Positions 26,045-62,532 of a stretch of 64,000 nucleotides of DNA are shown here, piece after piece. The translations under genes were made by a program, and so were the position numbers. Position 1 is the first letter of the stretch; each line of letters starts with the position of its first letter. Under the pieces are notes generated by a model. The model worked only from the letters and a program-made list of their open reading frames with translations, was not told the DNA's origin and did not search any database. The stretch is from Haplodiscus bocki (lineage: Eukaryota), in assembly GCA_965655095.1 (NCBI GenBank), contig OZ296656.1:84568001-84632000 (forward strand), read 5' to 3'.

Positions 26045-26475
26045 CTACGAAAAAAAAATAATTTTCCCAGAGGTACTTCCCAACGTCATTTACCACATCG
26101 TCGCTTTTTAGCTTTCGAACATATTAAGTTTAACGACGAGAATCTTTGAAGCTGGCATTAAGATAAGGTCATTAAACTTGAAATCTATTCATATTAGACA
26201 TTTTGATTTAACAGATCAAAGATTTAACAAAATCCGATGGAGACCTTTTTCCGAATAGGAAAACTGAACGGAAAAAAATTCATTTTTTAGCATATCGGAG
26301 AAAACTTCGCATTGCTTTTTACTAGTTGTTCTTTAAAATGCTTCAAATGTACAAGAAGTTATATATCAACCAACTTCGCTCAACTTGGAAGATAATTAAT
26401 TCTACACGAATTATGGAATTAAATCCAAAAACGAGTTAAAAGCTAATAATCATCACTTCGAGAAGCTACTCTCAC

Positions 26476-27073
26476 TTGAGATCAGCATCGAGCTTGTTGC
26501 TTTCGAAGATAGGTGTCAATGATGGCAGTACTCTTTTCTCCAGCACCAGTTTGAACGAATTGTGGACCCCTTGCTTGATCGCTTGCTCCAAAGGGGGGTA
26601 AAACTGTGTTTGGATTCGACACAAAAAGTCAAGCAGTGTAATTGAAGTGGCCGGGTGATGTTTCAAGTTATGATACATAACTAAAATGGCTGGCTCTATA
26701 TTCATGATGTTATCTTTATCCAACTGAAACGTCAGCCAATCAAAAAAGAGAGCGAGTTTACACTCAGCTGCGATCGAATTGGATTTGCATTGGAGGAGAA
26801 GCCAGCCAATCACAGCCCAGCGAGGAATTACTTCGCTACAAAGAATCTCATTGGTTGGATGGATGACGCAGCAGATGTAGCGAATCAAATCAGGACAGAG
26901 GTTTTGTGACTCGGCAGTTGAAAGGTAAGATTTGTGGAACCAGTCCTGGTATCGTTTCTGGTTGCCAAATTTGACCTTGGACATGAGAAAGTTTAACTTG
27001 TTCTCCATTTCTGGAGTGAGACGAGCCGCTATGAATTTTCGCTGGCTTCTTGTTTGCAGCAAATTCAGCATTC
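26476..27073 (-). CDS. INTS3: Integrator complex subunit 3, coding exon 3
   Basis: [55 protein letters not shown] and [11 protein letters not shown] are INTS3/SOSS-A N-terminal-domain motifs. Acceptor TTTTAG, donor AA|GTGAGA. Confidence 0.96.
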
Positions 27074-27199: not shown

Positions 27200-30060
27200 T
27201 TAAACCTGCAGTAAACTCTTGGGTGAATTATTTCTACTTCAGACGAAGTCGCAAAAGGCGGCAAAACAGTTCTTTTCAAACATATTAACAAGCAGAGTAA
27301 ATCTTCATATTTCACAGAAATTACCGGTAATTTAGCGTTATAAGAATTAAATTTCGCTAAAAAGAATACAAAATATTTTTGATAAACTACTCATTCGATA
27401 TCTTCAAATGATAGGGATCGTTCAAATGATCAGCAATTGGCTCACTACTATTTCTGATCCGCTCTTTCGGCGAATTTTTTATAAAAAATCAGTGGTCTTA
27501 GTGAAATGAATTAACCCAAGTATTTTTCTTCTTCGCATTGACAGAAATGGTTCAAGTAGTGAATGAAGTACATCAATAAACCAGTATGCCGTATTGAACA
27601 ATTGGTTTCACATTACAAAAATAATACTTCAACAAAACTCTTCGCGGGACGTAATGTCGTATTTTAGATATCACGCCTGAATGCCTGGAAAGTTAGAATC
27701 TTCTATCTCTGACATGTTCACAAAACTTCAGATTTCCATCGACCAAAACTCCTAAATACTTACAATAATCATTTAATAAAGACTCATTTATTTCAACCAG
27801 CAGAGTTGAAGCACTCCTCTTTCTGTTAAAACAAAGTAAACTCGACTTGTCAACATTTACAGATAACTTATTGGAAAGGAACCAGTCACATATATTGGAG
27901 AGATCGTTTTAAAAACTTGCGGGAGACAAACAAACACTTGTAATGTTGGAATCGTCTGCAAATAGATACTTGCGAGAACTGAACTGTTTTAGTAATGTCA
28001 TTGATGTAAACCAGGAACAAAAGTGATTCTGAAACAGAACCCTGCGGAACTCCTGTTGTTATATTTGCCCATACGGCTGGACCTTTACCTTCTACAAACT
28101 GCATTCTATTTGATAGATAACTTTAAAACCATTTGTTTCCGATTCCTCTAACGCCGTGAGCCTCTAATTTGTCTAGCAAAATCGAGTGGTCTAGAGTGTC
28201 AAAAGCTTTTTGAGCTCGATAATGCACTGATATTATGAGTCTCTTTAGAGCCCATACGAATAATTTCCGTTAATTTAGCCAGTGAATCTATAGTGCAATG
28301 TTTCTTACGGAAACCAAAGTGTTTGTCGTACAGAAGATTATATTTTTCCAAATAGTTATTGAAACGTCTCATCACCCGCTGATAAATTTTACTTATCGAC
28401 AATACAAGAGAAATAGGTCTGTAGTTATTCATATCCTTGAAGCACCCAGATTTATAAAGGGGTATAACTTTAGCATTCTTTAGCATGTCATGATACACTC
28501 CAGATTCCAAAGAAATGTTAACAAGTTCTGCAATGAAAGGAGCAATTGCCCTTGCACAACTTTTGAGCACTACTTTAATAATGTCTGGACCAGATAAATG
28601 TTTGCTTTTGAGCTGTTGAATTACTTTTAGGCATTCGTTTTCGTTTGTTCTGAAAGAGTACATTGATTGATGTGCACGCTGGTCTGTTTTCGGTGAGTTC
28701 TTCACAGGAAGAGACTGAGCTAAATTCGGTCCAACAAACAAAATGATGATTGAAAGCATTGGCAATCTCCGTGTAGTCATATACTTCATACCTGTCTACA
28801 TCTAAGCTACTCAATTGCCTTGACTGAAACCTGTTACCAGTAACTTCTTTTAGTACTTGAAAAACTTGCCTCGAGTCTCCAATAAAGCTCGCGAATTTCT
28901 TGTAGTAGAAACTTTTCTCGGCAAATCTTATCGGTTGATCAACTTTTATTCTTTGCATCAAGAAAGAGTCTGTTTTCCGCGCATTTTCCTTAGCTTTTAT
29001 CCACAGTCGGTGCAACTTGTTTCTTTTATTTATCAAAGTCTTCAACTCTTTATTAAACCAGTCAGCAATAATTTTCGATCGAGATAACTTTTTTCTAAGC
29101 GGTACGAGTTTATCAAAAACCTCAGTAAACGCGCAAAGAAACCTATTGTAAGCCAAATTTGCGTCAAGATTCTACGCATTGATAACATTTATTAGGTTCA
29201 GCTATCAGCTTGTTTTCGAACTCAATTGAATTTTCCGACCTGAATCATTGACCCCTCCCCTTCGATTGATTCGACAACTAGTAATGACTCCATTGTATGC
29301 TGGTATTAGATATGGAACATTGTTATCACTATTTTCCAACCAGGTTTCAGAAAAGCACAAGATGCGAGGCGGGAGACCCGAGGCAACTGAAGTGCTTCTT
29401 CATCTGCATAATGTTTTTTAATGACCGTACATTCAACGAAAGCACCTTGACTGATAATAAAGAGGGATTGGAGGGTTTCACAAATTCATTTAAATTTTTT
29501 CTTTTGCCCTTCTCATGTTTACGTTCCTTCTTGTTGCTGTGCCCCACCGAAAACTCAAGTAAAACATTTCATCACGTTGGTCAAAGAATAGTCCATGAAG
29601 GACCCGCCCTCAAATAGTCGTCCAATTTTGTAAATCTTTTTGTCTTGTTTCTACACAAAAAAGATTGTGCCATCCCTTGTCCATACAGATTCTACCATGT
29701 CGTCACTTCTCATCAGTTTGATGAAATTCATTCATGGTCTCGTAATGCCTTCGTAAATCTTGACATTTAATCCACTCAAACTCACTAGTTTCTTGTTCTG
29801 TAACAACGTTATTTTCGCAACTAATCGGGAAAAACGCACTATGACTGGTTTCAGATGAATTCGCGAGGGTTACAACACTACGTCGGGTATTGTTTGGCAT
29901 ATCCATTATGGTGTGTGTGGGTGGGGTGGGTTAAATCAACGGTCTTATTCCAAATTTTTTTCAAGACTTGCAGCTTGAACACCGGAAAATCATCTTATTT
30001 CGCTTCTCAACACACCGGAACCCCGTCTGAACAACACACAAACGCCTATCACGCGAAATG
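27200..30060 (-). mobile_element. Decayed APE-RT LINE (CR1/L2/Jockey group) in INTS3 intron 2; boundaries approximate
   Basis: Fragments VLSLNVRSL (APE start), AKVIPLYKSG...NYRPISL...FGFRKK, GVPQGSVSESLLFLVYIND and PIVQYGILVY, with many frameshifts. Confidence 0.88.
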
Positions 30061-32282
30061 AAAATTGTAAGAAGCCAAGACGTCCACAAGTCTTCAATAA
30101 CTTTTTGTTTTACAAGAACTTAAATTTCGACTTCTGCAGCTAATTTTATATTTTTCAAAAGAATTATATTGACCAAACGATCTATCGACCACAATTTTGA
30201 GTTAACACCTCAACAGAATTACACTGACTCCTTTTCGATGTTTCAACGTAGTTGTAGTAGTTTTTCATCAAAGTCTCCGAAAGAAAACATCCGAAAACTT
30301 CCAGGACTTGGTGTAAGTTTGTTGCTCAAAAACAGTATATCATCTCAACCCAGTCTGCGAAGAACTGAATTCTCGTCTTGAAAAGATAAAGCCAAGCAAG
30401 CCAAAGGACTCCAACGTAAACTTTGAGAGCGATCAGAGACAATCCTAGAATTAACTATTTTTCTACTTAAGCAAGGGGCTGTGATCTTTACGGCTTTGCC
30501 AATTTCAAAACGTTTCATCCGAACAATTTAGCACTCAATCAACATCAATTTGTTGAAGCTGTTCCACATAAATAACTTCAAAAAAAGATCACGTTTCGCT
30601 AGATTTTGTTCATTTAAAACGAAAAAGTAAAAAGTTTTTTTCTCTGAAATCAATTCATTCTGCTCCCTTTAGAACCCCAGATCATCTGCCATCAATTTCC
30701 AATGAAATCGATATTAGAGTCAAACGAAGGAGCCCAACATGAAACTTGAGATAGGTTAGACAATCAAACACCTACAGGATATGCAACCTAAATTTCGAAA
30801 CTTCGACATTCCTTATTATTTTGCTCCTTTCGAAACGGCAAATCTTAAAACCCCAGCGTTCAATCGGCCTTAAATGTGCTTTCATTTTCTAAACGCTAGT
30901 ATTGAACTTTATAGGGTTTCTGTAGGGCTCTGCCACTTCTCATCGGTGTCTTGAAAATACTATGTCCGAAAGAAAAACATCGGCATCAAGGATGCTGGGC
31001 ATTAAGCGCTAAGAATTTAAAATATTAAAATGGATTTCAGCAATTTTAGCATGAAAGGGTGGATGACTTTGAGAAAAAAGAATATGCTAACTAACAAATT
31101 TGAGAACACTTGAATCAAATACCTGTCCTTAAGTCGAAGATTGAATAGATTAAATAATCAGTTCGCTTTAGCTCAAGAAAGAGATGAAAATAAATGTGTA
31201 TGGAATAAGAAGCAAGAAATTTTCCAAGTCACTGTATCAGCCGGCCAGTCACGTGGATTTGCAAAGTGCTAAGAAAAAAGTAAAGCCTACAGGCCTTTCG
31301 CTTATGATCTTCATGCCTAAAAACAAATTTCCGAACTTTGATTCTGTTTTGTTCAATTAAAAATCTCATTACTACTACTCGTTTATTAACGACCTCAATT
31401 CTTGTGTGAATCACTTCAAAAAGACCCGATTCAAAGCTTTGTGGTATCACATAGGATCCAATAAATTTTCTCACTCAATTACGTAGAATAATTGTTACTT
31501 ATACCATAAATTTGCTATTTTCCAAAGCGGCATAATATTGGCAACTGAATGTTCAATAGACCTGCATTATGTTAGCTCGTTAGAAAGGTCTGTACTCCTG
31601 TCGGGTGTCTAGGGCCTTCGATTAGTTTTAATGGAGAGAATATTTCAGAAAAAAAGCACGTTTTCCAAAATTTGTGTGGTGCTTCAATGTTCTCAGAACC
31701 ATATATTTTCTCAATTCGGTTATCAACAAAAATTAGTCGCATGGTCAAAATAAGAAGAAAAACGATTAATAGCTTTGTGAATAATTTTCTGAATCTTTGT
31801 TTAATAGATTAAGGCATCAAAAAACTTCTAAATATGACCTGTTTGAATATTTATATGAATCAAATGTCAACGTAGATGAAATATGGACAAAAACTGGCGG
31901 ATAACTGAAGGATTTCACGAAAGTTCGAAAATGTAGAGGGAAGCCGAAAACTCAAAACATAGTAAGCTGGCACAATTAGCGGATACATGACGGATTAACA
32001 GTGGCTGCTAAAAGAGGGATAAATAGAAAAACGGATAATCGAGAGATAAATCGGAGATATCACGAAATTTGCCTCTCAAAAAAGTTTGTCATATGCAACA
32101 CTTTCAAATTTGCTATGATATCTTACTTTTGAAAATATATATACTCATACTTTGCCAATAATGCTACACGTTTTTCCATTTTTTAAGCAGCTGTTTTCGC
32201 AAAATATCGCAGTGCAACTGAGCCTCTTATTTCAATTTTCCAGGTTCCAGAACCAATCTCCGATTCAAAAGAAAAGTCTTAC

Positions 32283-32740
32283 CGTTAAACTTCGGGCTGA
32301 GTAAATGAGGTTGATAAAGAATGTCTCTCCAAAGTGTTTGGAAGTCCGGTATTGTGGCTACGTTCTGCAGAAGTCTCAATAAATCACGTCCAATGATGCA
32401 ACAGTCCATAAACTTGTCTCGAAGCAACGAAACGCAAAATTTGATTTCCTTTTGTCTCAGAGATTCAAACCTATTGGTACCACGATGATCGCATATTAGT
32501 CTGAGATACGTGTACAAAAAGATGCCCAGAATGAAGGAATCCGTTTCGTACAAGAGTGTCATTTTGTTCTCGATGAAGATGTCAAGTAATTTGTCTGCTA
32601 GCCAAACATTTTTGGCCGAAACGTCGCCACCTACAATGTTTTTCATGAGGCAGATGCAACATTGGTTTGCCCCAATGCATCGGCTTTTGACAAGTTGGTT
32701 CACAAACCAAACGAGTTGCTCACGCGCCGTGTCTGTCAAT
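32283..32740 (-). CDS. INTS3: Integrator complex subunit 3, coding exon 2
   Basis: QLVWFV...GGDVSAKNVWLA...YTYLRLICDH...LRQKEIKFC...IGRDLLRLLQNVA. Acceptor TTTCAG and donor G|GTAAGA; phases match the neighbouring exons. Confidence 0.96.
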
Positions 32741-33014
32741 CTGAAACAGAATTAAGTTAACGTGAAGTTTCTAGTTTCAATTTTTTCCATAAAATTTGAT
32801 TTTTAGTTCCATCAGCAAAACGCATTGGCACTATACCATAAGTATCCTCAGGCACTTGAATTTTACAGCCTGCAATTTCTGAAGTTTTTCGGTAGTTCCC
32901 AAATTTCTCCAAATGTCAACAGATATTTTTCGAAACTCTAAACCAACAAGAAAATAACTCAAAATATCTCAACTGGCTATGTTGAAATCGTACTCGAGTC
33001 AAATCTCCACTAAC

Positions 33015-33361
33015 CTGAAATAGAACTCCATGATAATCACGTTGAGCTTAGCCAGAATTGATCCAAAATGGTCTCTTGTAATGAGAGCGAGATCCTGGAA
33101 TGCCCGATTACTTGAGTCAGCATCCATCAAAATGAGGTAAAACAATCCAAGGCATACTTTTTCATGATTCTCGCTATTCGCATTGGCAGTTGATGTCAAA
33201 ATGTCGTGAATTTCTTGGTTTGATTTGCCAGGTTGATCAGGAGGTTGAACAACTAATTGACGAACGAAAGTTCCAAATGACTCGAGTTCGTCTTCTAAAC
33301 GCTCTTTCGGTTCAAGCTTCGTTACAACAAACAAGCCGGAACAACTGGTTTGACCCACCAT
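33015..33361 (-). CDS. INTS3: Integrator complex subunit 3, first coding exon (probable ATG at 33361)
   Basis: HEKVCLGLFYLIL...FQDLALITRD...KLNVIIMEFYFR matches the INTS3 N-terminus. Donor AG|GTTAGT. Confidence 0.92.
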
Positions 33362-34277
33362 ATTGCTTCCTTCTATCCAGACTTCACATTTCAAGCTGAA
33401 CTGAAAAGTACTGTTGATTATTCCAGACGCAAAGCCTACTCATGCAGCGCCTATCACCAAACATTTAGGCACGAAAATTTTGGTGACCAACAGAGACCAT
33501 GATTCAATGTAAGTAATCATATAATCGTACTTTCAGTGGTTCCTGGCAACTTTGAATTTTATGCCGCAAGTGTTTTACAGCATTCCCGAAAAAAAAGTAT
33601 TTGCGAGAGCACTCTCTCCTGTGGGAGCCCCTAGTTCGGGGTAAAAACTTAGCTGCTTTCATTGTCTCGTTTGATTTCGTGTATTCTAAGTTTGAGATAA
33701 CTCTGGAACATCTTCACTGGTTCTCTAATTCCCACGTTCCATAGCTTCAGATGTCCTTTGTGCTACACACTTCAATGCAGTTTTCCAATCCTAGACTTAT
33801 CAAGGAAGTGGTTTATTTTTTGTCACTTTGCTACTCTCAATTGAATTTGCGTGATGATCGAGTTCTGATCCTAGTTGCCAAGAAAAAAGCCTTCTTGCTC
33901 GTCGCCAATTAGAATATTAGATACAAGCTGTTAGGCGCCAGTGGATGATTCGCTCAAGAACTTTCCGTACATGACATACCTGGGATGTCTTCAATCAAAT
34001 TAAACAATCAAATATCTTCACACTCGATTTCATAGATGGTGTCAAGTTGATCGAATGCATCGAATCAGACGAGGAGTCAATCACAAAAATGAGTTAGAAA
34101 AAACAGGTTTGACAAATTACTGATTCGCTCAATTCAGGAAAAAGGATGAATTACATGACACTCCTCAACTTCCGACAACATTACCACAGCTGCATTTTAT
34201 GGAAATCGTATTAAAAATAAACTATTAATCGTTGATGCATACAAACACAAGATCCTTATGATTAATACCAGGGATTG

Positions 34278-34430
34278 CAATACCAATACCAATACCAATA
34301 CCAAAAGTCAATACTTGGGCCCTCAATACCAATACCAATACCAATACTATCAAAATTTTGACCCTCAATACCAATACCAATACCTAGACCCCTCAATACC
34401 AATACCAGAGGGCTCAATACCACAAAAGTG
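34278..34430 (+). repeat. Subterminal (CAATAC)n array, left end of hAT; a similar array lies at 36780-36896
   Basis: More than ten CAATAC/AATACC hexamers directly visible; probable transposase-binding sites. Confidence 0.85.
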
Positions 34431-36273: not shown

Positions 36274-36443
36274 TTGAATGTTTAAGCATAAATATGTTTT
36301 CAGCAGTGGGAAGTTTGAAGCTCTAAGCATTTGCGTTACATTCACCAAAAAATTCTGAACAAAAGATATTTTCTTCATATTCAGCGTAAATTTTCGATTA
36401 AATAACATATTAGGTCATTTTGGCGATACACGCTTCGTTTGGT

Positions 36444-36710
36444 CGTAATCACTGAAAAATTTTAATTAAAATCGATACAAGTCAATTTTTCATGTACATG
36501 CTTATTTCCATCGTAATCACTGAAAAATTTTAATTAAAATCGATACAAGTCAATTTTTCATGTACATGCTTATTTCCATCGTAATCAGTAAGAATTTTAA
36601 TTAAAATCGATACAGGTCAATTTTTGATGCACATGCTTATTTCTATCGTAATCAGCAAAAAATTTTAATAAAAATCGATTTTACTCATTTTTTCATGTTC
36701 ATGCTTATTT
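36444..36710 (+). repeat. 68-bp minisatellite, 4 copies, in the hAT 3' region
   Basis: CGTAATCA...AAAATCGAT...CATGCTTATTT begins at 36444, 36512, 36580 and 36647. Confidence 0.9.
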
Positions 36711-36994
36711 TGGCTGTTTAGAGCACAAATCCTTCATTAGGGGTAAGATAAGACCATTTTTGATGTACATGCGTATTTTCAATACCAGTTCACGATTGGG
36801 TCAATACCATTCACTAACCCAGGTATTGACTCAATACCAATACCAATTCCAATACCAAAAGTGCTCAATACCAATACCAAAAATCTCAAGTATTGAATTC
36901 CCTGATTAATACTACTACTACTAACTACTACTACTACTACTAAAAGACTTAAATTATGAGTAATCATAAATGAAAAGACACCAATAACTTAATT

Positions 36995-39000
36995 ATTTAC
37001 AGATGACAGCAATAGCATTGAATGAAAGAAGCACATGATTTCCTTTCATAAGAATTAAGGAAATAATTCCAAAAAAGAGATTTCAACAGGGGTTTGACTT
37101 TTTCACATGGATCATAGAAATTTATATTGTGTTTCATTGAAACGAAGTTCGCAAGTCTCGTTGCTCGATGGATGAAATTTGAATCTGTCAGTTTGTTTTG
37201 TTTTTTGGAGCTTGAAAGGAGGAAAACTAGTTTCGCGGAGGTTTTGTCGAGGTGCTTTAGAAGGCTCTATCAGGGACCGAACTTCAGGGCCAAGCTTTCC
37301 ATTCAGAACCTTGTTGAAGGTTAGTAGATCCTCTAACTGAAACAGAAGAGACAGTGGCAGAATGTTGCTTTGAATAAGACGCTCTTTATACGTGTCATAT
37401 GAAGTTATCCAACGCGTGACTCTACTTTGGAAACTTTCCAACTTTTCCAAATTAGTTCTGTTTGCGAACCAGAAAGTGGTTCCATTTAAAATCAAGGGCC
37501 TTAAATAAAGAACATATACTGAAGCTTTCTGACTGGTGGATAGATTATTTGGCAAGTTTCTTTTGATGGAGATGAATCTACCATGAGCTTTACAAACTTC
37601 CGACTTGATATGCTCAGTCCAGGACAGATTATAACAAAAACTTATTCCCAAATCAAAAACTGGCTTTCGAGTAAAAGAAATGTATTCTCCACCAAAAACA
37701 CATAGAGGTTGTTCTTTAATGTCCTTTCTCTTCAGTGTGAACCATATTAAACTTGTTTTGCTGAAATTGAACTGCATTTTATTTTCCAAGGACCATTGAT
37801 GTAGTCTAAGAAGATCATTCTGAAGCAAGGCTGGATCTGTATTGTTGATTTTTGTGTCATCGGCAAAGAGATAAGCAATAGAGGTTTCAAGCACATCCGG
37901 AAGGTCATTAATAAAAACCAAAAACAGCAGAGGCCCAAGCACAGAACCCTGTGGAACTCCACTGTTTATAGGCAAATACTCGGAATAGATGTTATTTATG
38001 ACCGTCCGCTGAGATCGATCTTCTAGATAGGATGATAGAAGTTGCAAAAGTTTCCCACCAATGCCGAAAGTTTTAAATTTTTCAATTAGCAGGTAATGAT
38101 TCACTTTATCGAAAGCTTTGCAGAAATCGATATATAGTGTAAAAACTTCTTCGCCTATGTCAAGAGAGTCGTGTAGTAACTTTAAATGCAATAGTAGTTG
38201 ACTAGTTGTTGAGCGGTTCTTCATAAATCCATGCTGTGAAGAGTTTATTTTCGGTGCAATAAATTTATATAGGTGCTTGAAAAGAAGCCTCTCAAAGCTC
38301 AATGATAGCCTCGAGACTGGCAACAGGCCAATAATTGGATATAATGTTCTTTGCTCCATTTTTATGCAGAGGCTTCATATCAACTAATTTCCAGTTATCA
38401 GGATATTTCGCAGTTTCCAAGATACTTCTGGCCAAGCCAAAGAAATGTATACTCAATGGAGTTGCAAGTTTCCGAACGGTTGCGCCTGACATGTTGTCAG
38501 AACCCATACCATCACTTGTTTGAAGAAGCGTTTCAATGACTTCTTCAAGTGAGAATTCAATTTCGTTCAGAACAGAAGGAGGGAAGTCTCTGTATTGTCT
38601 ATCGCATGTTGTGAACTGACTTAGGAAGAAAGTATTGAATTCTTGCGCAATTTCCGAAGGTCCAATAAACTGGTTATTGTTATGAAACATTTCATTCGGG
38701 AACTGATCTTCCATCCGAAAAGATTCGATAAGTTTGTAAATATCGTTCACTTTGGTATTAAATTTGAGGAAATTTTCGAAAAACAGTTGTACGTCCAGTT
38801 CAATTGACTGCAAAAGAGTTCTCTTAATCACGAGGTACTTTGATTTGACAAACTCCCTTCGCATCAAGGTTAAAAAGCAATTCATGAGGTGAGTCGTATG
38901 TGACGAGAAATAATTTGGTAAAGACTGGCGATATAATTTTTTGTTTCTGATATAAACCAGCAAAATTTGATGCAAATTCCGAAACCAATTCTGAGAATAG
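36995..39000 (-). pseudogene. LINE A ORF2, 3' part (linker, reverse transcriptase, C-terminal Cys cluster); frameshifted
   Basis: ORFs 38292-39020 and 37112-38359 carry RT motifs; frameshifts at ~38335 and ~37180. Confidence 0.9.
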
Positions 39001-39064
39001 CAAGTTGATGTTTTTGACATTTCAATCGGAAACTATTTAACTTATTAAATAGTTTCCGATTGAA

Positions 39065-39949
39065 ATGTCAAAAACATCAACTTCGACGTCGAAATGTGGA
39101 TCTTGCAAAAGAGTGGTGAAAGGTGGCGACCCCTCTGGCATTGCCTGTGACAATTGTAGTGTCTGGTATCATGGATATTCATGTGCTCGGCTCTCACAAA
39201 AAGATGTCACTGTGATGGGCAGAGTTAGTGGTTGTCTCTGGATCTGTAGCTCTTGCAGAGACAATGATGCCTTCAAATCCGAAGCTAAGTTCAATTCCTT
39301 ACTTGCTATCAAAGAGCTGAAAACTTCGATGAATTCAGTACAAAACTCTCTTACTGAAATTAAGACGAAACTCGAGCCTGCGCGCGAAATAAATAAGCCA
39401 AAATATATTGAAACAGATCTTGTAAAAGACAATAAGTTACCCCCAAATGCTCCTTTTCAACTAAAATTTGACAATTTAGCTGAAGCAAACGTTGAGCAAG
39501 TTTCGCCTGAAAATCGAGCTTCTGCGATATTGAATCATGAAATGGATGCTGTAAATGAAGTCTTAACTCACCTTGAAGAATCCCCGCAAATAATGGACAT
39601 AAAGCGCCTAGGAAAATTTGTAAGAAATAAAGAAAGACCGCGCGCAGTTATACTCACCTTATCATCAGCTTGGGATGTTCGGAAAATTTTATCAAAGGCT
39701 CCAAAAATAAAAAACTTTCACAAACCAATTTTCATTAATAGGATGCTATCCCCAGAAGAAAAATTGAATGAAAATCGCATTCTGCAAATACGCAGAGATC
39801 TGCTAAACCAAGGCATTGAAAGAAGTTTAATCAAAATTAGAGATCTTAAACTTTTTGTTGACGGCAAAGAAATTGACCTATCTGATTATGCAATTCTGAA
39901 AAACCAAGCAGCTGTTTCTGCAACAAACCAGCTACCTGAGAAAAACTGA
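39065..39949 (+). CDS. LINE B ORF1 protein (PHD finger, coiled coil, RRM-like region)
   Basis: CGSC...CDNC..WYHGYSC...WICSSC is a PHD finger; IKRLGK...RPRAVILTL...IFINRML is typical of L2/CR1-type ORF1. Confidence 0.9.
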   Translation: MSKTSTSTSKCGSCKRVVKGGDPSGIACDNCSVWYHGYSCARLSQKDVTVMGRVSGCLWICSSCRDNDAFKSEAKFNSLLAIKELKTSMNSVQNSLTEIKTKLEPAREINKPKYIETDLVKDNKLPPNAPFQLKFDNLAEANVEQVSPENRASAILNHEMDAVNEVLTHLEESPQIMDIKRLGKFVRNKERPRAVILTLSSAWDVRKILSKAPKIKNFHKPIFINRMLSPEEKLNENRILQIRRDLLNQGIERSLIKIRDLKLFVDGKEIDLSDYAILKNQAAVSATNQLPEKN

Positions 39950-42854
39950 CTATTTCAGTATGATGTATTTCTATTCAACTGCCAAAGTCTGATTAATCTT
40001 GACAAACGACATCAGTTATCAAACCTAACAGCAAGAGAAGATTTCGATATTCTCATGCTTACCGAAACCTGGACAACAACTGACTTTGCTGATGCTGAAT
40101 TCTTCCTTCCAAAATATGCCATCTACAGAGCAGAAAGAGATATACCGGATAATTTAAAAAAAAAAGATAGAGAGTCAGCCTACATGGTGGATCAGCAATC
40201 GCTATCAAAAGAAATATTCCTCACACAAATATTCCTTTTACTTCGGATTATCTGCGACAATCAGCTGTTTTTGTCCTTATTGACGCTGGATCATGCTCAA
40301 TTGCGTTGATTGTAGTCTATAACCCTCCCTCAAATAGTAAATATCGAGCATCTATTAATGAGTGGATCACGCTTCTTAATTTTATAGAAAATCACAAAAC
40401 TGACTACCATATACTAGGTGGTGATATGAATCTTCTAAAAACCAATTGGAATATCAATGAATCTGCTGATGAATATGAAAGATTATTCATCAATGAATTT
40501 GAGCAACGAAACTATATTCAATTGGTAAACCTTAATACCACCAGAAGCAGTATTCTTGATCTCATATTGACCAAAGATCCTGAAATCTTGCAGTCTATAA
40601 TTGAATGCAACTCTGTCATGTCAAACGGTCCCAGCTCAAATCACTCTTCTATCCGATTTAGTGTTTGCATTAAAAGCAATCATAAATACTACAAGAATAT
40701 CACTAATCACAGGAAAGTGTATAGTTTCTCTAAATGTGATTTTAATGCTTTGGCTTCCCTCATGATAGAAACTCCATTCGTACCTAAGTGTTTTAGTAAT
40801 TGTGACAAAAATATCGAAGAATTTTACTCTTGGATATATCAACTTATTGAACAGGTTACGCCAGTAGGAACATTGCATCGTTCGTCCTTAGCACCTTGGG
40901 TCAGCAGTTCTACATCACATCTAATCAAAAAATTTAATACAGTTGTGAAACGTCTGAAAACTAAACCGTGCAACACTCTTTTGATTAAAAAATGTAGCTT
41001 ACAGGCCACATTATCCGATGAATTACGCAAAGATCTGTGTGAATATCAGCAAACTATTTTTGCTACCAAAAAAACTCAAGCAAAATGTTTCGCCACTTTT
41101 GACAACTTAAACGTGAAGAAATATCTCCAGGTATTTACAGAGATATCCCGAATGACAGGAAATGGGCTGAGGATGATAAAGATCGAGCTAATTTGTTTTG
41201 TGAATATTTCAGCAGTGTTAACAAAACTGATAGAATGACTAAAACTCCTGAATATAGCAACCCTGGGAATACAGTAATCAGGATCACAAAGACTGAAATC
41301 TATAAAACATTAAAAAAACTCAATGTGAATAAAGCAAAAGGTCCTGATGAACTTCCAGTCGCATTGTTCAAAAACACCGCAGATGCTATTCAACACCCAT
41401 TGTATAGCATCTATCGAAATGTAGCCGGTCTGGGAGTTTACCCAGAAACGTGGAAGCTTACATTAGTAGTTCCCGTATTCAAAAAAGGTGATAAAAAATT
41501 TGTTGAAAATTATCGCCCTATTAGCCTGCCGAACACCACTTCAAAAATTTTTGAAATAAAGGTATACAACCAGCTGTTAGCAACGTATTCCCCACATTCA
41601 AACGACTTACAGTATGGCTTTAGAGCGAAACGATCACCTGTGCTAAGATTACTGAAGACTTTATCCCATATATATGAGAAATGGACAAAATCTGAATGCA
41701 TTGCGCTCTTCCTGTTTGATTTTAAACGAGCTTTTGATAGCATAGACCACGTAATTCTGATGAAAAAGCTCCAGCGACTTGGGTTATCCTCAAAATTTTA
41801 CTCACTGCCTACATCATACATCACAGACAGGAAAATAATGGTGAAAATCAATAACGCCGCTTCAAAAGTGGAAAAAATCAACTGCGGTGTAGCACAAGGT
41901 ACCCTTATTGGTCTTCTTTGCTTCATTATCTACATCGATGACTTACCAAATGAATTGCTCTATTTATATGCATATCTTTTTGCCGACGACCTATCTGGTC
42001 TATATATCGGATCCTGCTCTCAATCATTTCTTCTCAAAAACGACCTCATGAGCTTGCAAATTTGGAGTGAAACCCGCTTTTTACTTTTCAACTCAAGGAA
42101 ATGTCACTATCTCTTGCTCAAGGGACAGCTAAATTTTTCACCTGAAATATACTCTGAGGAAATTGCTGAGTGTACTCGAAATACTGACCTGGGTCTGGTG
42201 GTAAGTAACAACCTCAAATGGACTGCTCATATAGAAACTAAGCTTGCAAAGGCAAACAAAACATTCCATATGTTGAAGAGAAATGTCAGCAAATCTATTT
42301 CGCAATATTCAAAACTTCTCTTGTACAAGAGTACAATTATCCCCCAACTTCTCTATGCATCAGAGTGTTATTCCTTATCAAGAATGGATGTCAGAGCTCT
42401 AGAGGCCTTCAACAAGAAAATCACCAAATGGATGTGCTATTTAGATTCCTACAAAGACAGATTATCTCACCTGCAAATTTTGCCTTTGACATATTTCATG
42501 GAGATGAAAGAAATTATTCTGTTATCGGGTATTGTTACACACAAATATGATGTATATTTTGATTCCAATATCGTTATGAAATATGGGCGAAATGAAATAC
42601 AGTTCTACTTACCTCAAATATCCTGTGAATTATTGCGTGACAATTTCTTTTATCGTGCCTGTTATCGAGCTAATGTCCTTTCCAAACCCTTGAACATCAC
42701 CGACAATGAAAATATCAAAAAGAAATTACTTAACCAAATGTGGAAAAAATTTGTTGAACAATATCAAGAAAACAACATCTGCTCATGGTACTTTGTTTGC
42801 CTATGTGTAACGTGTAGGAGCATCCACAGAAGACAGATGATCATGAATGCATAA
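39950..42854 (+). pseudogene. LINE B ORF2 (APE endonuclease and reverse transcriptase), two frameshifts
   Basis: LFNCQSL, LTETW, VYNPP, GGDMN, ILDLIL, NYRPISL, FDFKRAFD, GVAQGT, LFADD and C-terminal CLCVTC. Frameshifts fall in A-runs at ~40160 and ~41070. Confidence 0.92.
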
Positions 42855-42977
42855 ACTATTGAAGCCTGATTCGACAGATATTTCAAGAGCAACAACAACG
42901 GAAACTGTTATCAATGAACTCATTTAATGGGAGCAGTCCCCTCGCTTTGGGCGTAAATTCAGTATATATATATATAT

Positions 42978-43803
42978 AATAGAAAAGATCAGCTGTTGCA
43001 TCTTGAAAAGAAAAAAGACTGGTTGAAAGATCGAGTTTCAAATACTCAAGCCTCTCTGGACTCAGGACGAGCCTACTTCTGGAATTACGCATCATACCAT
43101 CGACCGGAAGTAAATGTTGTGTTGAGAGTGTGAAGTGCAGCAAAGCATGATCAGAGTGGTCACAAAACTCTGACTCGATGGAGACACAAACTTGAAAGTT
43201 GCAAAGAAAAACGTCCAGGGTATTCCCAGACTTATGAGTAACAATGTCTACATATTGGCTAAAGCCATTTGTCAATAGAAAGGAGGATAAAATAGGATAA
43301 TTGGGAATATCATGGAATGGTAAAGATGACCAATCAAATCCAGGAAAATTGAAGTCGCCAATCAGAAATATTTTGTCGTCAGTTGACCAGGAGTATTGCC
43401 GGAGAGATTCTTGTATGAAATTCGTCAGCCGGACATCAGAGATCCGGTATTCACTGCTAATTGGCGGGTTGTATATCAGCAAGAATAGAATACCTTCAAT
43501 TACTGTAGAGCAACCACAGTCAAACTGAGATGTTAACGTAGTAGACTTGCTTGGATCCCAACCAAACGCTGCTGTACCACCATGTATTCGCAAGCTTCTA
43601 TCGGAACGACAAATTTGAGCTGGAGTGTTGTTGGGGAAAACCACTGAACTTGTTTGACTATCGAACCACGTTTCAGTAACGAACAGGTAGCTACAAGTAC
43701 TCAACAAAAATTTATTGAGAACTTTCAGTCGTCTCTCAAGTAATAGAAGGCCTTGAGAATTTAGGTAAAATAGATTCAATGATAATTTGCAGAGAGTTGG
43801 TTG
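42978..43803 (-). pseudogene. LINE A ORF2, APE endonuclease domain
   Basis: YLNSQGL, VTETW, HGG, IYNPP, IGDFNFP, THKSGNTLDV and SDH motifs. Confidence 0.92.
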
Positions 43804-44615
43804 TCAATCAAGCTTCACCTCTATCTCGCCTGAAGACGTGGATTGGTAAAGCCTGAACTTTTGTATCCGAAGGTCTTCTTTCCTTATTCCAGAATTCATT
43901 AACTCCCATCGTTTTTCAATACTACTTGTTCTTTTCTCACGTCTGCCTCTGACAGGCCAGGCGTGATTAGAATACGTGAGTTTTTGTACAATTCCTTTTC
44001 AGAAGCCTTTGCTACCAGCGCTCTGGCATCCCAGACAGAATTAAAGGTAACGAGCAGTTTTCTGGTTCTGCCATCAACAAATTTCCCAATGCGTCTGCAT
44101 TCCTTAATCGGATATGTACATCCGATTGACGAGCAGACGTTCTCAACTTCTTCTTTATCTTTGAACTGACGTTTGATTCGACTTGCTTCATTGTTTTCTG
44201 GAATCCCACTTACTCGGACCTCGTATTGGTATTCTTCAATATTTTTTGATGGAGATACCTTTTCTACATTTTGTATTCCTTTTTTAGCGGACAGTTCGAT
44301 AGGCGGAATTTTCATAATGGAGGTTTGTAAGTCATTAGCAATAGAACTTAGCTTTCGAGTTTGTTTGGCCAGTTCCTCGACTGCTTTCGTCTGTGGAAGA
44401 CAAGAATCGCAGAACCAGCGGCAGTTTGATATCCTCCCCAGCACGCTGATGTCATCGGAAGAAAGAGACACGCAGGCGCCATGGAACCATCTGCTGCATT
44501 CATCGCACATGATACAAGGATCCACGTGCTCTGCTATTTCCCCCTCACATTGGCCACATCTTGAGTGTTTTGCTTTGTCATCAGAGACACTCGCTTTTGC
44601 TCGTTTTGGAGGCAT
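43804..44615 (-). pseudogene. LINE A ORF1 (PHD finger), one frameshift at ~43912
   Basis: CGQC...CDEC..WFHGAC...WFCDSC. The post-shift frame RWELMNSGIRKEDLRIQKFRLY aligns with LINE B ORF1 RRDLLNQGIERSLIKIRDLKLF. Confidence 0.88.
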
Positions 44616-45599
44616 CGAAAGATCTGAAGTTGACTTATTAAACAGCCGAAGCTATTTAATAAGTTTATCACAACAATTAGGCTAAGCACTACACCTAAGC
44701 ACAACATCTAAGTGGACCCTCCAAAGCTTAAGCAGCCTGTCAAGGAGAGCCCCAAAAACAACACTTTCTAATTTTCTGTCCCGCAAAGGTTTTTCTCCGA
44801 AAACAAAGATAATCATAGTTTTTCTGACCAATGTTTGAACATTTTGGTGTTTTGTTCTGCGTTCCGGTATTGCACGTTGGCCTGATGAAAAATTGATTGG
44901 AAGTACTCCCCGGCATGTCAAGAAGTTATCTGGAGAATATGTTATTTGAGGGACTTGCACTTTGCCTATACATTAACACCCGAGTAAAAGTAGAGATTTC
45001 AGTAATCATTCACGGAAAAATATTCAAACGACCATTTGAGTACAACTCATTGACAAAGTCCGAAACGATTTTCAAAAAGTCCCTAACATTAACTTGAAGG
45101 ACAGTCAGTCCATTTTTTATAACGATGAGGAAGTTAGTATTATCAGTTTTCTTCGAAACAAAAATTTCGCAAAAATTTTTCATGCGGGTTGAAAACTGAA
45201 TAAAGGTTATTGCAGGAAAAGCTTCTGTAGATTAAAGTCTGTAAGATAACTCGGGTTCTAAAAAGTTTAATACGAATATTCAAAAAAGCACGTATCACAT
45301 AATAACGCATTGTGGAATGTACATGAATTTGTGGGGGCAATTTTTTAACACTTTCGCAATTATAGAAATTAAATTTACAACCTGTGACAACTTTCACGTT
45401 CATTCATTTGACAGTTTCGGGGTCCGTGAGTATTTTTTCGTCTGAAAAAAAAACTTTCAAAGTTTGAGTGTGACTAATTGTGTCTGGGTAAAATTTGAAA
45501 GCAGCTTGTTCTAAGCATACCAGGAGATAAATTTAGTTGGTTCGTCAATTAAAAATTTAAAAACAGTTATTGTAATCGGACAAAAAATTGTATCATCCG

Positions 45600-54531: not shown

Positions 54532-57500
54532 ATGAATACATGTGAATATAAAATTAAAGTTTTACAATTGAATAAAAACATTTCAATAAATTAATGCTAT
54601 AAAATTTGCAATATAAACGGAATAATAAATATAACCATGACTTAACCAACACACATCTTGCAACAAATAACCAATATTATTGTCAACAGTGTAAAAAAGT
54701 AATAAACCTAGCAGATAAAAGATTTCATTTACAATCAAATGAACACAAAAACAGTAAAAGAATGTGGTATTGTGAGGTATGTAAAAAGGATATAATTATT
54801 AATACCAAATCTTCTCACATCAAATCTGCAGCACATATAGAAAATGAAGTTATTTCTAGAATAAATATTAATCTTACAGATAAAACATATACATATATCA
54901 ATCCAGATTTTGAAAAAGTAGATAATTTAGTTAAAACAGCTATTGATGATTGTACAAAATACTTTCATAGATTTAAACATAAATGTGTATTTATTGTGAA
55001 ATTTTATCATGCAACACATGGTACTACAAACTATTTTACAATAACAAATAAGTTTAAAAATCAATATGAAAAATTAAATGAAGCAAATGAATTAGATCAC
55101 CAAATAGATGAATTCGAACAAGGAGAAAGTGGTTATATATTTGATAGCATAAAAACATTAACATTAAAAATGTTTAAATACCATGATATAAGAGCATCTA
55201 GCTATTGTAAATTACCTAAATCGTTTTGTAATTCAAAATCTATAGTAAACATACAAAACAAGGACAACTATTGCTTTCTATGGTCTATTTTAGCTCATAA
55301 ATATAAGGTAGATAATCATCGCGAAAGAGTGTCACATTTTGAAAATCATTTTCATGAACTAAATCAAGGTGATATTCAATTTCCTATGAAAATAAAAGAT
55401 ATACCAACATTCGAAATATTAAACAACTTAAACATAAATGTCTTTGAATTATCAGCTAATGACAAATCTCTTTCACCCAAATATGTTATCAAAAACTATT
55501 ATGATGAACAGATAGATCTACTACTTTATGAAAACCACTACTGTTTAATAACTAATTTACATAACTTTTGTAGGAATAATGAAAACTATACACATTTATG
55601 TAGAAGATGTTTAAACACATATGGAGACCAAACAAAACTTGAAGAACATGTGTTAAGATGTATTGAGCAAAAAGTTTGTAATATATCATATATGCAACCC
55701 AATCAAAAGATAAAATTTAATGACTGGTATATGAAAATAGACCCACCAAAGTGGATTGCGGTTGATTTTGAATGTATGAATATCCCTATTAACAATAACA
55801 ATAACAATAACGATAATGTTAATGTTATTGATCACAATAACAATGGTGTTACAGTTAAGATGTTTGTAAACAAACCAGTTGCAATAGGTTATAATATAGT
55901 CAAAAATTCTGATTATGATAACTTAAATTTGGAAAAAGATGGCTATATCAAATGTTTTGTTGAAGATTGTGTTGAATGGTTTATAAATGAGATGTTGGAA
56001 ATGGAAAGCTATATGAAAATTTATTTTAAAAATGAACTCGAAATTAATCTTGATACAATTCCGGAAAATTATGATCAAACTACTTGTTGGTTATGTGAAA
56101 AAGAATTTAAACCTAAAGATATAAAAGAAAATCCAATTGTTAGAGATCATTGCCATTTAACAGGTAGATTTAGAGGCTTAGCTCATAATAATTGTAATCT
56201 GAATACACGAAAAGCACATACTTCATTTGTACCAATATTATTTCATAATTTTTCAGGATATGATTGTCATCTAATCTTTGAGAAATTAGTTAATATGGCC
56301 ACCGCAAAAAACATTAAAATGAATGAGAATGATATTAAAGCTAAATCATCAGAAAATTATATATCTGTTAAACTAGGATGCTTAAAATTTTTCGATAGTT
56401 ATAGATTTTTAGATGCTAGTCTGGACAAATTGTCTCTAACGCTAACATATTTTCTATCTCTAGATAAAAACGATATGGAAGATGATTTGTTCAAACGAAA
56501 ACTTGCTTATCCATATGAAAAAGGTAAAACCATTGAATCATATTACAAACCATTGAAATTAGGTAGAGAACACTACTTTTCCACTTTAAAACAATCATAT
56601 CCAGATTTCGAGGAAATAATAAGAACACAAGCTATTATTGTAAAAAATAAGATAACTAATTTAAAAGAATTAACAATGTTATATCTGAAAAATGATGTGT
56701 TATTAGTAACAGATTTTTTTCCAAAATTATATAGACACATGTAAAAAAGCCCATGGTATTAATCCATTATATTCTTATTATACACCATCATTTACATGGA
56801 AAGCTGGCTTGAAAATGACTGGAGTATAATTAGATTATATAACTGATGATAAACTCAGATTATTACTTGAAAACAATATGAGAGGAGGACCAAGTGCTTG
56901 TATGGGTAATCGCTATGTAAAAAGAGGAGAAAGAAAGATATTGTACGAAGACTTAAACAATCTTTATGGATGGAGTATGTCTCAATATTTACCAACTGGA
57001 GATTTTCATGAAATAAAAGTTACAAGAAGCAGTTTAAAAACAATTTTAAGAACTCCAGATAAGGACGAACATGGATTTTTAATAGAATGTGATCTAGAAT
57101 ATCCATCTAGCACACATGAAAATACAAAACTTTTTCCATTTTTACCTGAGAAAAAAACAATAAAAGTAGAAGATTTTTCACCTTATATGACGATAAACAA
57201 ACCAGAAAAAATTAAACCTACAGAAAAACTGATTTTGGATCAAACAAACAAACAGAGATATTTTATACATTATAGAGATTTAAAATTTTATTGTAAGACA
57301 TGGAATTAGAATTTTAAATTTACACACTGTTTATAAATTTAAACAATCTTCTTTGCTAGCAAAATATATTAAATATAATAGAGAACAAAGAGAAAAAGCA
57401 AAAACCGAATTTGAAAAACATTTTTACAAATTAATGAACAACATCTTTTACGGAAAAACGATTGAAAAAATCAGAAGACGATTGAACCTCGATTTGATAG

Positions 57501-58204
57501 ATAAATCAGATATCCCCAAAATATTAAATCGACAACCAAAGTTATCTTTCGATGACAAAATTGCCGAATATGATAAATTTAATTTGTACACATTTAATAA
57601 GGAAACTATCAAATTTACAAAACCTATTTATGTTGGATTTTGTGTATTAGAATTATCAAAACTCTTAAAGTATGAATGGTAATATGACAAAATGCAACCA
57701 TTTTTTGGAGAAGATAATCTGGAATTACATTATTTAGATACTGATTCCTTCATATTTTCTTTCAAACCAATTAAAAGCTTGATTGAAGATCTAAAATATT
57801 TTAAAGAGGATTTCGATTTTAGTGATTTGGATCCATCTCATGAACTATATTCAGAAGCTAATGAGCAAGTTATTGGCAAAATGAAGCTTGAAACAGCTCC
57901 AGAGTTAGATTTAGATGAAGGAGTATTTTTAAGGAGTAAATCTTTTTCTCTTAATATTAAACAAAACAGTTCACATTGTAAAAACAAAGGCGTCCAAGAT
58001 CATAATAAATACACTTTAGAAGATTATAAATATTGTTTAGAGAATAATGAAATTAAATATGGTGTTAACTATTCTTTTAGGAGTAATAAACATGAAATTA
58101 CATTGGTAAAACAAAAAAAGATAGCATTAAATACATTTGATGATAGAAGATGTTATATTGATATATATAATAGCATACCATGGGGTCATAATCCTACCTC
58201 ATAA
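54532..58204 (+). pseudogene. Protein-primed family B DNA polymerase with N-terminal zinc fingers and an endonuclease VII-like insert; disrupted
   Basis: DNYCFLWSIL, VRDHCHLTGRFRGLAHNNCN, FHNFSGYD, YPYE, RGG, DLNNLYGWSM, KLMNNIFYGKT and YLDTDSF. Frameshifts at ~54610, ~56720 and ~57295; stops at ~56827 and 57680. Confidence 0.93.
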
Positions 58205-58242
58205 CTGAGTTAAAAATTGAATAAATTTATAATAATTTGTAG

Positions 58243-58848
58243 ATGGCACTCTTTAACGATGTGTTTTGTCAAATCTGTGATAGATTCTATACAAAAGAAC
58301 GATGGAATAAACATCTCTATTCTAGTAGACATTTACGTAGAGAAATCAATGGATATTGGCCAGCATTTTTTCCACAACGAAAGCTAACTAGAGACGAAGG
58401 TATTAAACTTGAGAAAGCTTTTTGGGAAGTGATTCTCACCAGCAATGGCAATGATTTAGCATTGTTTGATTTTTTAAAATTATATTTTAGAATGTGTACT
58501 AATATAACAAACCATGTTCCAATTCGTTATTGGGATTATTATGATGATGGAAATGAAGAAAAACAGTGGGGTTATCGATACAAAGATGATATGATAGCTC
58601 AATTTAAACAAGATATATATAACAAAAATTACACTCTTCAAGATCAAGGCAAAGATGACCCAATTGATACTCTCGAGAACAGAATTAAATTTTGGATTAT
58701 TATTATTACCAACGATCAAGGTCCAGTACCTGATAACCTTTATGACTATGATTATAACGATGAAGGATTGGATTCAACTGTTCGTGGTTGGGAAATATTT
58801 CCTGAGATTGGAGAATTAAAAAAATTATTGGATATACTCAAAAAATGA
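58243..58848 (+). CDS. Polinton accessory protein with an N-terminal C2H2 (U1/matrin-like) zinc finger; function unknown
   Basis: Intact 201-aa ORF between polB and integrase; CQICDRFYTKERWNKHLYSSRH. Confidence 0.75.
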   Translation: MALFNDVFCQICDRFYTKERWNKHLYSSRHLRREINGYWPAFFPQRKLTRDEGIKLEKAFWEVILTSNGNDLALFDFLKLYFRMCTNITNHVPIRYWDYYDDGNEEKQWGYRYKDDMIAQFKQDIYNKNYTLQDQGKDDPIDTLENRIKFWIIIITNDQGPVPDNLYDYDYNDEGLDSTVRGWEIFPEIGELKKLLDILKK

Positions 58849-59012
58849 ATAAGTATATTCACACATATTAATGTATGTATGCACTATAATTACTCATATA
58901 ATTGTATGAATACACAGTTATAAATGTATGTGTGTGCAATCAAAATTACTCGTATATTTGTATGTATTCACAGTTATATTTACTCATGTAATTGTACGTT
59001 TACAAAATACAA

Positions 59013-59870
59013 ATGACTCAGAAAAACATTAAAATATTTATAAACGAAATCTATTCAAAAGGACCGAAACGAAACTATGCTACAAATAAAACAGACGTTT
59101 ATCATATCGATGACACCTGGTCTCTTGATATATTAGACCTCAAAGATTATGTTCCTGAAAACAACAGAGGATACAGATACGTTATAGTAATCATAGACAA
59201 TTTTTCAGAATTTGGTTGGACATTTCCTCTCAAAAATAAAAATACTCAAACAATAAAAGACTCTTTCGAAACTATTTTAATAGGCTCAAAAAGAAAACCA
59301 AATTTAATCGAAAGCGATCGTGGTAAAGAATTTTATAATAATATTTTTCAAGACTTCTTAAATAAAAACAACATTAAACTCTATTCTAGAAATAGTTCAT
59401 ATGGTGCTGTTTTTGCAGAAAGATTTAATCGTACTATCAGAGACCTTCTTAAAAAACCTGTTTTCGAAAAAGGTGATGTTAATTGGATTGATGTATTACC
59501 TACAATAACGAAACAATACAATAATAGAACACATTCATCGACTAAGTTGACGCCAATTCTAGCTAGTGTAAAAAAGAATGAAGGTTATGTTTACAAAAAC
59601 TTATTAGACAAACGAAAGAAAATTGAACCAAAGTTTCAGATAAACGATCTCGTTAGAACAGCAGATTTAAAGAAAACGTTTTCAAAAGGAGATACGACTA
59701 ATTGGTCTTATAAATTGTATAAAATTACAGAAATAATTAATGATACAATACCAAGTTATAAGATAGATAATTTAAAAGAAAGGTATAATGAATCGTTATT
59801 AAAAAAGACTGATTTAACCTTAAAAGAGAACAAAGATGTTATGAAAAAATTAAAAATTGATATTGTATAA
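59013..59870 (+). CDS. Retroviral-like (rve) DDE integrase of the Polinton
   Basis: WSLDILD / IESDRGKEFYN / FAERFNRT catalytic triad, YNNRTHSST and FSKGDTTNWS; open frame. Confidence 0.95.
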   Translation: MTQKNIKIFINEIYSKGPKRNYATNKTDVYHIDDTWSLDILDLKDYVPENNRGYRYVIVIIDNFSEFGWTFPLKNKNTQTIKDSFETILIGSKRKPNLIESDRGKEFYNNIFQDFLNKNNIKLYSRNSSYGAVFAERFNRTIRDLLKKPVFEKGDVNWIDVLPTITKQYNNRTHSSTKLTPILASVKKNEGYVYKNLLDKRKKIEPKFQINDLVRTADLKKTFSKGDTTNWSYKLYKITEIINDTIPSYKIDNLKERYNESLLKKTDLTLKENKDVMKKLKIDIV

Positions 59871-60034
59871 TTACACTTATTCAAAAATGAATAAACATAT
59901 AATTATAATTATATTTGTATGAATAATTTAACTTATTTGCGATTGTAATTGATCAATATAGTATAAATACACTTATTCAAATATGAATATTAGTATAAAT
60001 ATAATTATACTTGAATGAATACAATTTTTATCAC

Positions 60035-61286: not shown

Positions 61287-61341
61287 TTATATATAAAAAA
61301 ATCATAATAGCACATACTTACAATTATATTTGTGTACACTT

Positions 61342-62193: not shown

Positions 62194-62532
62194 TTAAAGC
62201 ACTTAAATTTTTATAAATACACTTATTCAAATACGAATAATAGTATAAATATTGTTATACTTGTATGAATAAATCGACTCACTTGTGATTGTGATTAGTT
62301 TGCTTAGTATAAAAACACCTATTCATACACGGATAATAAAATACGCATAAGTACTCATATGCTAGTAAGTATATCTCTGGTATACGTACAAATATAATTG
62401 TATCAAGTAATTATAAATAATGATCGATATTGTATAATTACACTTATTCGAATATAAATATTATTATAATTGTATGAATAATTTAACTTATTTTAATTAA
62501 TATTATAAGTGTATAACTTTTATTTTGTATGT

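Follow-up and report, generated by a model that had tools for sequence, protein, structure and literature searches.

Retrotransposons that carry the spliced leader (SL) of their host, or insert into it, have been reported from several lineages. In parasitic flatworms, partial leaders at loci of long interspersed nuclear elements (LINEs) and long terminal repeat (LTR) elements were ascribed to integrated trans-spliced retrotransposon transcripts (Calvelo et al. 2025, PMC12582326), and in Hydra about 30% of the Iso-Seq reads of transposable elements (TEs) bear the host leader (PMC12220107). In dinoflagellates, a DNA-encoded 5′ leader marks retroposed trans-spliced mRNA (PMC12014239, PMC5585692). 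SLACS, CZAR, CRE and NeSL-1 insert into the SL exon by means of a restriction-like endonuclease (PMC4640811). SL trans-splicing is on record for 30% of the genes of the acoel Symsagittifera roscoffensis, whose published leader reads GCCTAATTGTTGTGATAAACTTATTAAATAGA. This work concerns a stretch of 64,000 nucleotides of the acoel Haplodiscus bocki (assembly GCA_965655095.1, contig OZ296656.1, positions 84,568,001 to 84,632,000, forward strand), hereafter the window, in which two LINEs, LINE A and LINE B, share an identical 14-nt sequence at their 5′ ends. We propose, with a probability of roughly 0.85, that this 14-mer is the 3′ end of the host leader and that leader-capped LINE RNA was copied back into the genome. 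The GC content of the window, 36.3%, fits the 36.7% published for the S. roscoffensis genome, and the analysis placed the window in that species or one very closely related to it.

The LINEs described here resemble the flatworm loci in that the leader stands beside retrotransposons without the rest of the SL RNA; however, those loci belong to Platyhelminthes, carry partial leaders and came to light as a by-product of filtering SL gene candidates (PMC12582326), whereas in this acoel full leaders form the exact 5′ boundary of many LINE families, with 5′ untranslated regions (UTRs) almost absent. The use of host trans-splicing by TEs is shared with Hydra, but the observations in that cnidarian are made at the RNA level (PMC12220107), and those made here are a genomic footprint, which would mark the spliced RNA as the transposing template. 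The dinoflagellate cases are host retrogenes, often bearing tandem truncated relics that arise by re-splicing inside the relic (PMC12014239, PMC5585692), whereas the leader considered here has its sole AG at its terminus, where re-splicing would yield an unchanged leader and no tandem relic. Ribozymes of the hepatitis delta virus (HDV) type at the 5′ ends of R2, RTE and L1Tc likewise free promoter-poor LINEs from host co-transcripts and give them a defined 5′ end, but they leave an uncapped 5′ OH, whereas trans-splicing supplies a capped leader (PMC3185411, PMC4035085). In the present LINEs no ribozyme came to light, though no search aimed at one was made. SLACS, CZAR, CRE and NeSL-1 are also LINEs physically tied to spliced-leader sequence; LINE A and LINE B differ from them in being dispersed and of the APE type, with a leader that belongs to their own RNA. 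A literature search returned no description of leader-headed LINEs in acoels, and nothing came up for the run and contig accessions either. A leader on retroposed LINE RNA is already known in other animals, and the acoel case is a clear new example with an unusually clean anatomy.

The 14-mer and the host spliced leader

Within the whole window the 14-mer occurs in two exact copies only, at 39039-39052 on the plus strand and at 44652-44665 on the minus strand, lying 12 nt before the ATG of the first open reading frame (ORF1) of LINE B (39065) and 36 nt before that of LINE A (44615), just as a first-pass annotation of the bare sequence had placed it. Dinucleotide shuffles give a chance expectation of 0.01 matches, and none of 100 shuffles held two copies. 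A full-text literature search located the 14-mer within the published leader of S. roscoffensis, at nt 18-31; in LINE A the identity reaches a further 17 nt upstream, to 44682, beyond the part that the annotation had noticed. The leader matches in the window are the following.

44652..44682, minus strand: complete 31-nt spliced leader with which LINE A begins; aligned to the published S. roscoffensis leader with 0 mismatches; shuffles gave no match
44652..44665, minus strand: the 14-mer in LINE A (leader nt 18-31), exact match
44683..44687, minus strand: GCTTA, probable remnant of seven extra leader bases (GCTTTTA) that precede the 31-mer on mRNAs and SL RNA genes
39039..39052, plus strand: partial leader (nt 18-31), the 5′ end of LINE B, exact match

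Chance as the origin of the 14-mer and of the leader is ruled out by the shuffles, in which the 31-mer found zero matches. In bacterial and archaeal genomes the 14-mer followed by TTTC was matched 33 times; none of these matches extends the leader match, and all are attributable to chance.

The annotation had suggested, as one of two models, that the 14-mer derives from a trans-spliced leader, in which case it should head unrelated host mRNAs and be encoded in an SL RNA gene with a GT donor and an Sm site; both turned out to exist. Scanning metagenome and metatranscriptome contigs (those studied are designated by L-numbers) with the 31-mer gave 17 loci, among which eight transcript-like contigs carry the leader at their extreme 5′ end and encode eight unrelated proteins, namely a kinase, a TXNL1-like protein, an epimerase, a TSG101-like protein, a mitochondrial carrier, CCDC113, a nucleoplasmin-like protein and a DnaJ protein. 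SL RNA genes lie at three of the 17 loci and at a further locus, retrieved separately, that holds a tandem array, and are built of the leader, a GTAAGT donor (GCAAGT in one), a stem, an Sm-like AUUUG site and a terminal hairpin, with leader nt 17-31 paired with the intron in stem I. One SL RNA gene alternates with one 5S rRNA gene in tandem repeats whose units measure 906-907 bp (L025:7443-11114; L019:531-800); four intact units were seen, and the last unit breaks off after 15 nt of the SL intron. The 5S genes are recognised by Rfam, a search of which returned no family matching the SL RNA. The leader is thus an SL exon, being identical to the published leader on transcripts, encoded in a small RNA gene with a GT donor and an Sm-type site, and carried by many unrelated mRNAs.

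As to its length, the annotation rightly saw the 14-mer but took it for the entire leader, which measures 31 nt and probably more. Because the mRNAs and the intact SL genes carry seven further bases, GCTTTTA, before the 31-mer (L008, L010, L017, L019:524-561, L025:8342-8379), the leader is probably 38 nt long. The SL exon ends in ...ATAG, and the final A of the published leader, which is the commonest first base of acceptor exons, falls outside the exon since the SL RNA genes read ATAG/GTAAGT (the slash marks the splice junction). The published leader therefore seems to lack 7 nt at its 5′ end and to carry one base too many at its 3′ end. A divergent SL-like gene, also linked to 5S and also a target of the SL-specific LINE described below, was observed at L024:1935-2051 and 7410-7530, with an exon end ...GATAAACTTAAG/GTGATATC; it may represent a second class of leader, or else a pseudogene.

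LINE families headed by the leader

At least eight LINE families start exactly with the leader. Among the copies recovered by a protein search with an ORF1 query, namely independently of the leader, the full leader is present in all three of LINE A and in the single copy of LINE C, a family with 43% protein identity to LINE B whose copy interrupts a copia-like pol ORF and has an ambiguous target-site duplication of at most 1-3 nt. The flanks of the copies from this search turn unrelated 0-7 nt upstream of the leader; for LINE A, the copies on L004 and L005 carry the same 31-nt block at their heads, with C at leader nt 29 on L004 and T at leader nt 20 on L005, and have unrelated upstream flanks. 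Both models of the annotation had required the motif in other full-length copies. Five further leader-headed families came from the 31-mer scan. The leader-to-ORF1 gap is 5-36 nt in seven families, and on L018 the first long ORF lies 316 nt downstream.

The families share about 25-43% protein identity and have UTRs that do not align, while the leader is identical in all and its end is the SL exon end; within each family the joint between leader and LINE body lies constantly at the exact SL exon 3′ end. Because the families are so diverged and yet the borders of the shared block are those of the SL exon, these borders read as the signature of trans-splicing followed by reverse transcription; neither a promoter nor a site-specific target nor a template jump would leave such a signature. 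Upstream of the 31-mer, the A at −1 is kept in 10 of 10 leader-headed copies, with up to 4-5 of the seven extra bases retained, as would be expected if the cDNAs had ended within a few bases of the cap. Downstream, the weak similarity over some 8 nt past the 14-mer that the annotation had seen corresponds to a recurrent TTTC motif outside the leader, found directly after it in six of nine LINE families (e.g., window 39053-39056), with CTTC or TCTC in two more, and in none of the eight host mRNAs. On L020 (oriented, 35-110) a complex 5′ junction was observed, in which the full leader is preceded by repeats of leader pieces and of a 12-nt flank motif.

In the window, the minus-strand LINE A extends from about 44687 to 42978, is interrupted by LINE B, and continues from 39003 to about 36905. 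The LINE A copies on L004 and L005 are continuous across this break and serve as the empty site; because of this continuity, and because the LINE A halves overlap by 8 nt, LINE B can be recognised as nested antisense within LINE A ORF2, a nesting that the annotation had not seen.

42978..44682, minus strand: LINE A 5′ part (leader, ORF1, APE endonuclease); aligned to L004 5932-7636 at 96% identity; Pfam Exo_endo_phos_2
43899..44615, minus strand: LINE A ORF1 (PHD finger), ATG at 44615
36905..39003, minus strand: LINE A 3′ part (reverse transcriptase and (TAG)n tail); aligned to L004 7629-9706; RVT_1; 3′ end approximate
39004..42977, plus strand: LINE B insertion, antisense within LINE A ORF2; L001-L003 96-98% identical until at least 42952; domain matches
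39065-39949, plus strand: LINE B ORF1, ATG at 39065
40306-41238 and 41193-42854, plus strand: LINE B ORF2, broken in two
42963-42977, plus strand: LINE B (TA)n tail, with the target-site duplication directly 3′
38996..39003, no strand: LINE B target-site duplication, left copy AATAGCAA, 8 bp; from the 8-nt overlap of the LINE A halves on L004/L005
42978..42985, no strand: LINE B target-site duplication, right copy AATAGAAA, 8 bp; directly after the (TA)n tail
39002..39083, no strand: LINE B fold-back, 39002-39040 being the reverse complement of 39045-39083; 39/39 complementary, 4-nt spacer
44633..44664, minus strand: hairpin of LINE A, in which 14 nt of 5′ UTR are paired with leader nt 19-31 plus C and UUCG forms the loop; from fold z-scores

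With APE and reverse transcriptase (RT) domains in their ORF2 parts (Pfam), a simple-repeat tail and, for LINE B, an 8-bp duplication, both are APE-type non-LTR retrotransposons; a target-site duplication of LINE A was searched for in the window and none was found. Their ORF1 proteins, each with a PHD finger, are about 30% identical, in keeping with the distant similarity first noticed.

The hairpin of LINE A comprises 14 bp; across three copies its fold z-scores range from −3.5 to −5.2, and the changes on L004 and L005 preserve or lengthen the pairing. It resembles stem I of the SL RNA, and LINE A alone has 14 nt complementary to the leader just 3′ of it. The duplex energy between leader and 5′ region did not separate LINEs from host mRNAs and is uninformative because all the sequences are AU-rich; only the contiguous helix of LINE A stands out.

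LINE B differs in the length of its leader. All seven copies keep one and the same junction, ...ATAG/TTTCCGATTG, and the leader portions before it are as follows.

Window 39039 and L029:1475: leader nt 18-31
L027:1-20, L001:2966-2988 and L003: leader nt 16-31, preceded by re-copied AACT or A(A)CTTAT
L028:1461-1488: 10-11 nt, with another fold-back
L002: 5 nt

The snap-back structure reported by the first-pass annotation at LINE B is real, with perfect 39-nt arms around the 4-nt spacer, its right arm consisting of the last 8 leader nt and the first 31 nt of LINE B. Located within the target-site duplication and not shared by the other LINE B copies, it arose during this insertion, and it fits a cDNA end at 39039-39041 that primed itself through a 2-bp AA/TT contact. 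The RNA 5′ end that had been placed at the AA of the 14-mer can be upheld for the LINE B family; for LINE A the end lies 17-22 nt upstream of the 14-mer. Slippage, fold-back and short duplications commonly occur where a template ends, so that the LINE B template seems to run out, or the enzyme to halt, at leader nt 16-18. Such starts could result from an RT stop, a short-form leader or a transcription start in an inherited relic.

Origin of the leader at LINE 5′ ends

Several observations weigh against the proposal that these leaders come from trans-spliced LINE RNA. Leader nt 1-15 are absent from all seven LINE B copies, which begin at or near nt 16-18, and two rearranged short leaders are each common to at least two copies, which looks like inheritance and not renewal. 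The five families from the scan were found via the exact 31-mer, and their perfect leaders are thus partly ascertained. The stretch before the leader AG is modest in pyrimidine content, and beside the two cis 3′ splice sites read in INTS3 within the window (...tgtttcag and ...gttttag) the leader tail looks like the weaker site. The LINE evidence is, moreover, entirely genomic, no LINE transcript having been seen. The LINE B starts would equally be expected if the block were an inherited relic serving as initiator or core promoter, namely if a LINE, at least LINE B, had gained the leader on a single occasion, retained its 3′ portion and at present started at AACTT without fresh trans-splicing; the small internal duplications, the variants common to L001, L003 and the unit-length Logan contig L027, and one other LINE family, on L002 (2289-2304, minus strand), that also lacks leader nt 1-15 and has the same start, point the same way. 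However, the conserved block stops exactly at the SL exon boundary, sequence upstream of it is not common to the copies, no initiator (Inr) or downstream promoter element (DPE) match was seen by eye at the expected positions, and the full leader heads LINE A, LINE C and five other families, while a short-form leader or an RT stop could equally give the slippage and fold-back structures. We therefore regard the relic as an unlikely source, and the extremely constrained core promoter that the annotation had left as its second model, comparable to internal promoters of the Pr77 or Inr/DPE type, is disfavoured for LINE A and LINE C, where the borders are those of the SL exon, and keeps some plausibility for LINE B only.

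The remaining explanations place the leader outside the LINE RNA. Site-specific insertion into SL RNA genes, as practised by SLACS, CZAR, CRE and NeSL-1, would make the adjoining leader target DNA, and a genuine SL-exon-specific LINE does exist in the same genome; but its junction differs, with leader nt 1-17 on both sides, and the upstream flanks of LINE A, B, C and the others are related neither to SL gene flanks nor to one another, neither SL intron nor 5S gene ever follows these LINEs 3′, and LINE B sits within LINE A and LINE C within a copia-like ORF, where each has a tail and a short duplication of its own. This origin is scarcely credible, and an assignment of LINE A and LINE B to the SL-gene-specific CRE/NeSL type was rejected, as their flanks are not SL gene and they have APE domains instead of the restriction-like endonuclease. 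Chimeric retrocopies, in which the RT jumped from the end of the LINE RNA to SL RNA or another leader-bearing mRNA (cf. U6/L1), would draw on a known behaviour of LINEs at RNA 5′ ends, and the small duplications in LINE B leaders tell that slippage occurs. A jump to SL RNA would, however, import part of the SL intron, which was never seen, and the joint falls at the same LINE nucleotide in each family and at the exact leader exon end in all families, which renders template switching very improbable. The origin from trans-spliced LINE RNA agrees with the identity of the 14-mer to the 3′ end of the published leader, with the host mRNAs, with the SL RNA genes and with the other LINE copies, all of which favour the spliced-leader model of the annotation over its promoter model.

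The LINE that occupies the SL exon itself is of separate interest. It has APE, RT and zf-RVT domains (L025:1560-7473, L024:2340-7420, L014, L016), is bounded on both sides by leader nt 1-17 as a 17-bp duplication, and ends in an A-rich tail, ...AAAA, that abuts leader nt 1. On L025 it occupies the first unit of the SL-5S array, with another tail just upstream, and its subfamilies, 69-90% identical, use the same site. Its top-strand break, at leader nt 17/18, is near the nt 16-18 where LINE B leaders start. It looks L1/Tx1-like, with distant relatives labelled LIN1, and is probably the first APE-type SL-exon-specific LINE.

Other features surround the LINEs of the window. A 68-nt tandem repeat of five units and CAATAC-type microsatellites adjoin the LINE A tail (36387-36778; 34264-34417; 36824-36889). 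INTS3 exons lie on the minus strand at 26472-27071, 32227-32739 and about 33013-33352, with LINE A some 3.5 kb upstream in the same orientation and a possible acceptor, ...acttttcag, about 50 nt before the INTS3 ATG; an INTS3 intron holds a third LINE RT fragment in the same orientation (27700-28700, minus strand; 33-40% identity to LINE A/B). A Maverick/Polinton-like element occupies 54606-63042, with one ORF for an rve integrase, one that is double-jelly-roll capsid-like and one of 712 aa that contains an endonuclease VII-like motif. A LINE ORF2 relative, P0090, is labelled as stemming from a cyanobacterial metagenome-assembled genome and is probably misbinned animal DNA.

A proposed route for LINE RNA

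The mechanism that we propose starts from the demonstrated leader identity, SL RNA genes, leader-headed host mRNAs and leaders at the insertion boundary of many LINE families. LINE pre-RNA would probably be made by read-through transcription, and SL trans-splicing would add the capped leader at an AG that lies a few bases upstream of ORF1. Once mature, the leader-LINE mRNA could serve as the template for target-primed reverse transcription, so that a cDNA reaching the RNA 5′ end would make the leader the first bases of the new copy, as in LINE A, while an early stop would keep only the leader 3′ part, as in the LINE B of the window with its cDNA fold-back. The leader contains a single AG, at its end, and CUAAU at nt 3-7, and because of these two features the integrated leader could be a self-regenerating acceptor. 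We infer that splicing is repeated every generation and that the integrated leader is the acceptor for the next round, whereby the LINEs would need no promoter of their own.

A wider and more tentative picture, to which we give somewhat less than even odds, is that of a guild of acoel LINE families without promoters or long 5′ UTRs that would live on host SL trans-splicing. The leader might then be a portable, self-renewing 3′ splice site, with the branch-point-like CUAAU and the terminal AG, by which co-transcribed copies would be re-capped at the same base, and the complementary segment of LINE A might dock the SL RNA and rebuild a stem-I-like hairpin after splicing.

How LINEs without an internal promoter obtain a capped, translatable RNA with a defined 5′ end is an old question. 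The leaders described here would be a genomic record that the transposing RNA bears the host leader, in many families at once and in a form testable in one animal. Genomic leaders may mark the true full-length 5′ ends of LINEs and date their insertions, and the annotation of SL RNA genes and trans-splice sites must filter out the leaders that LINEs carry.

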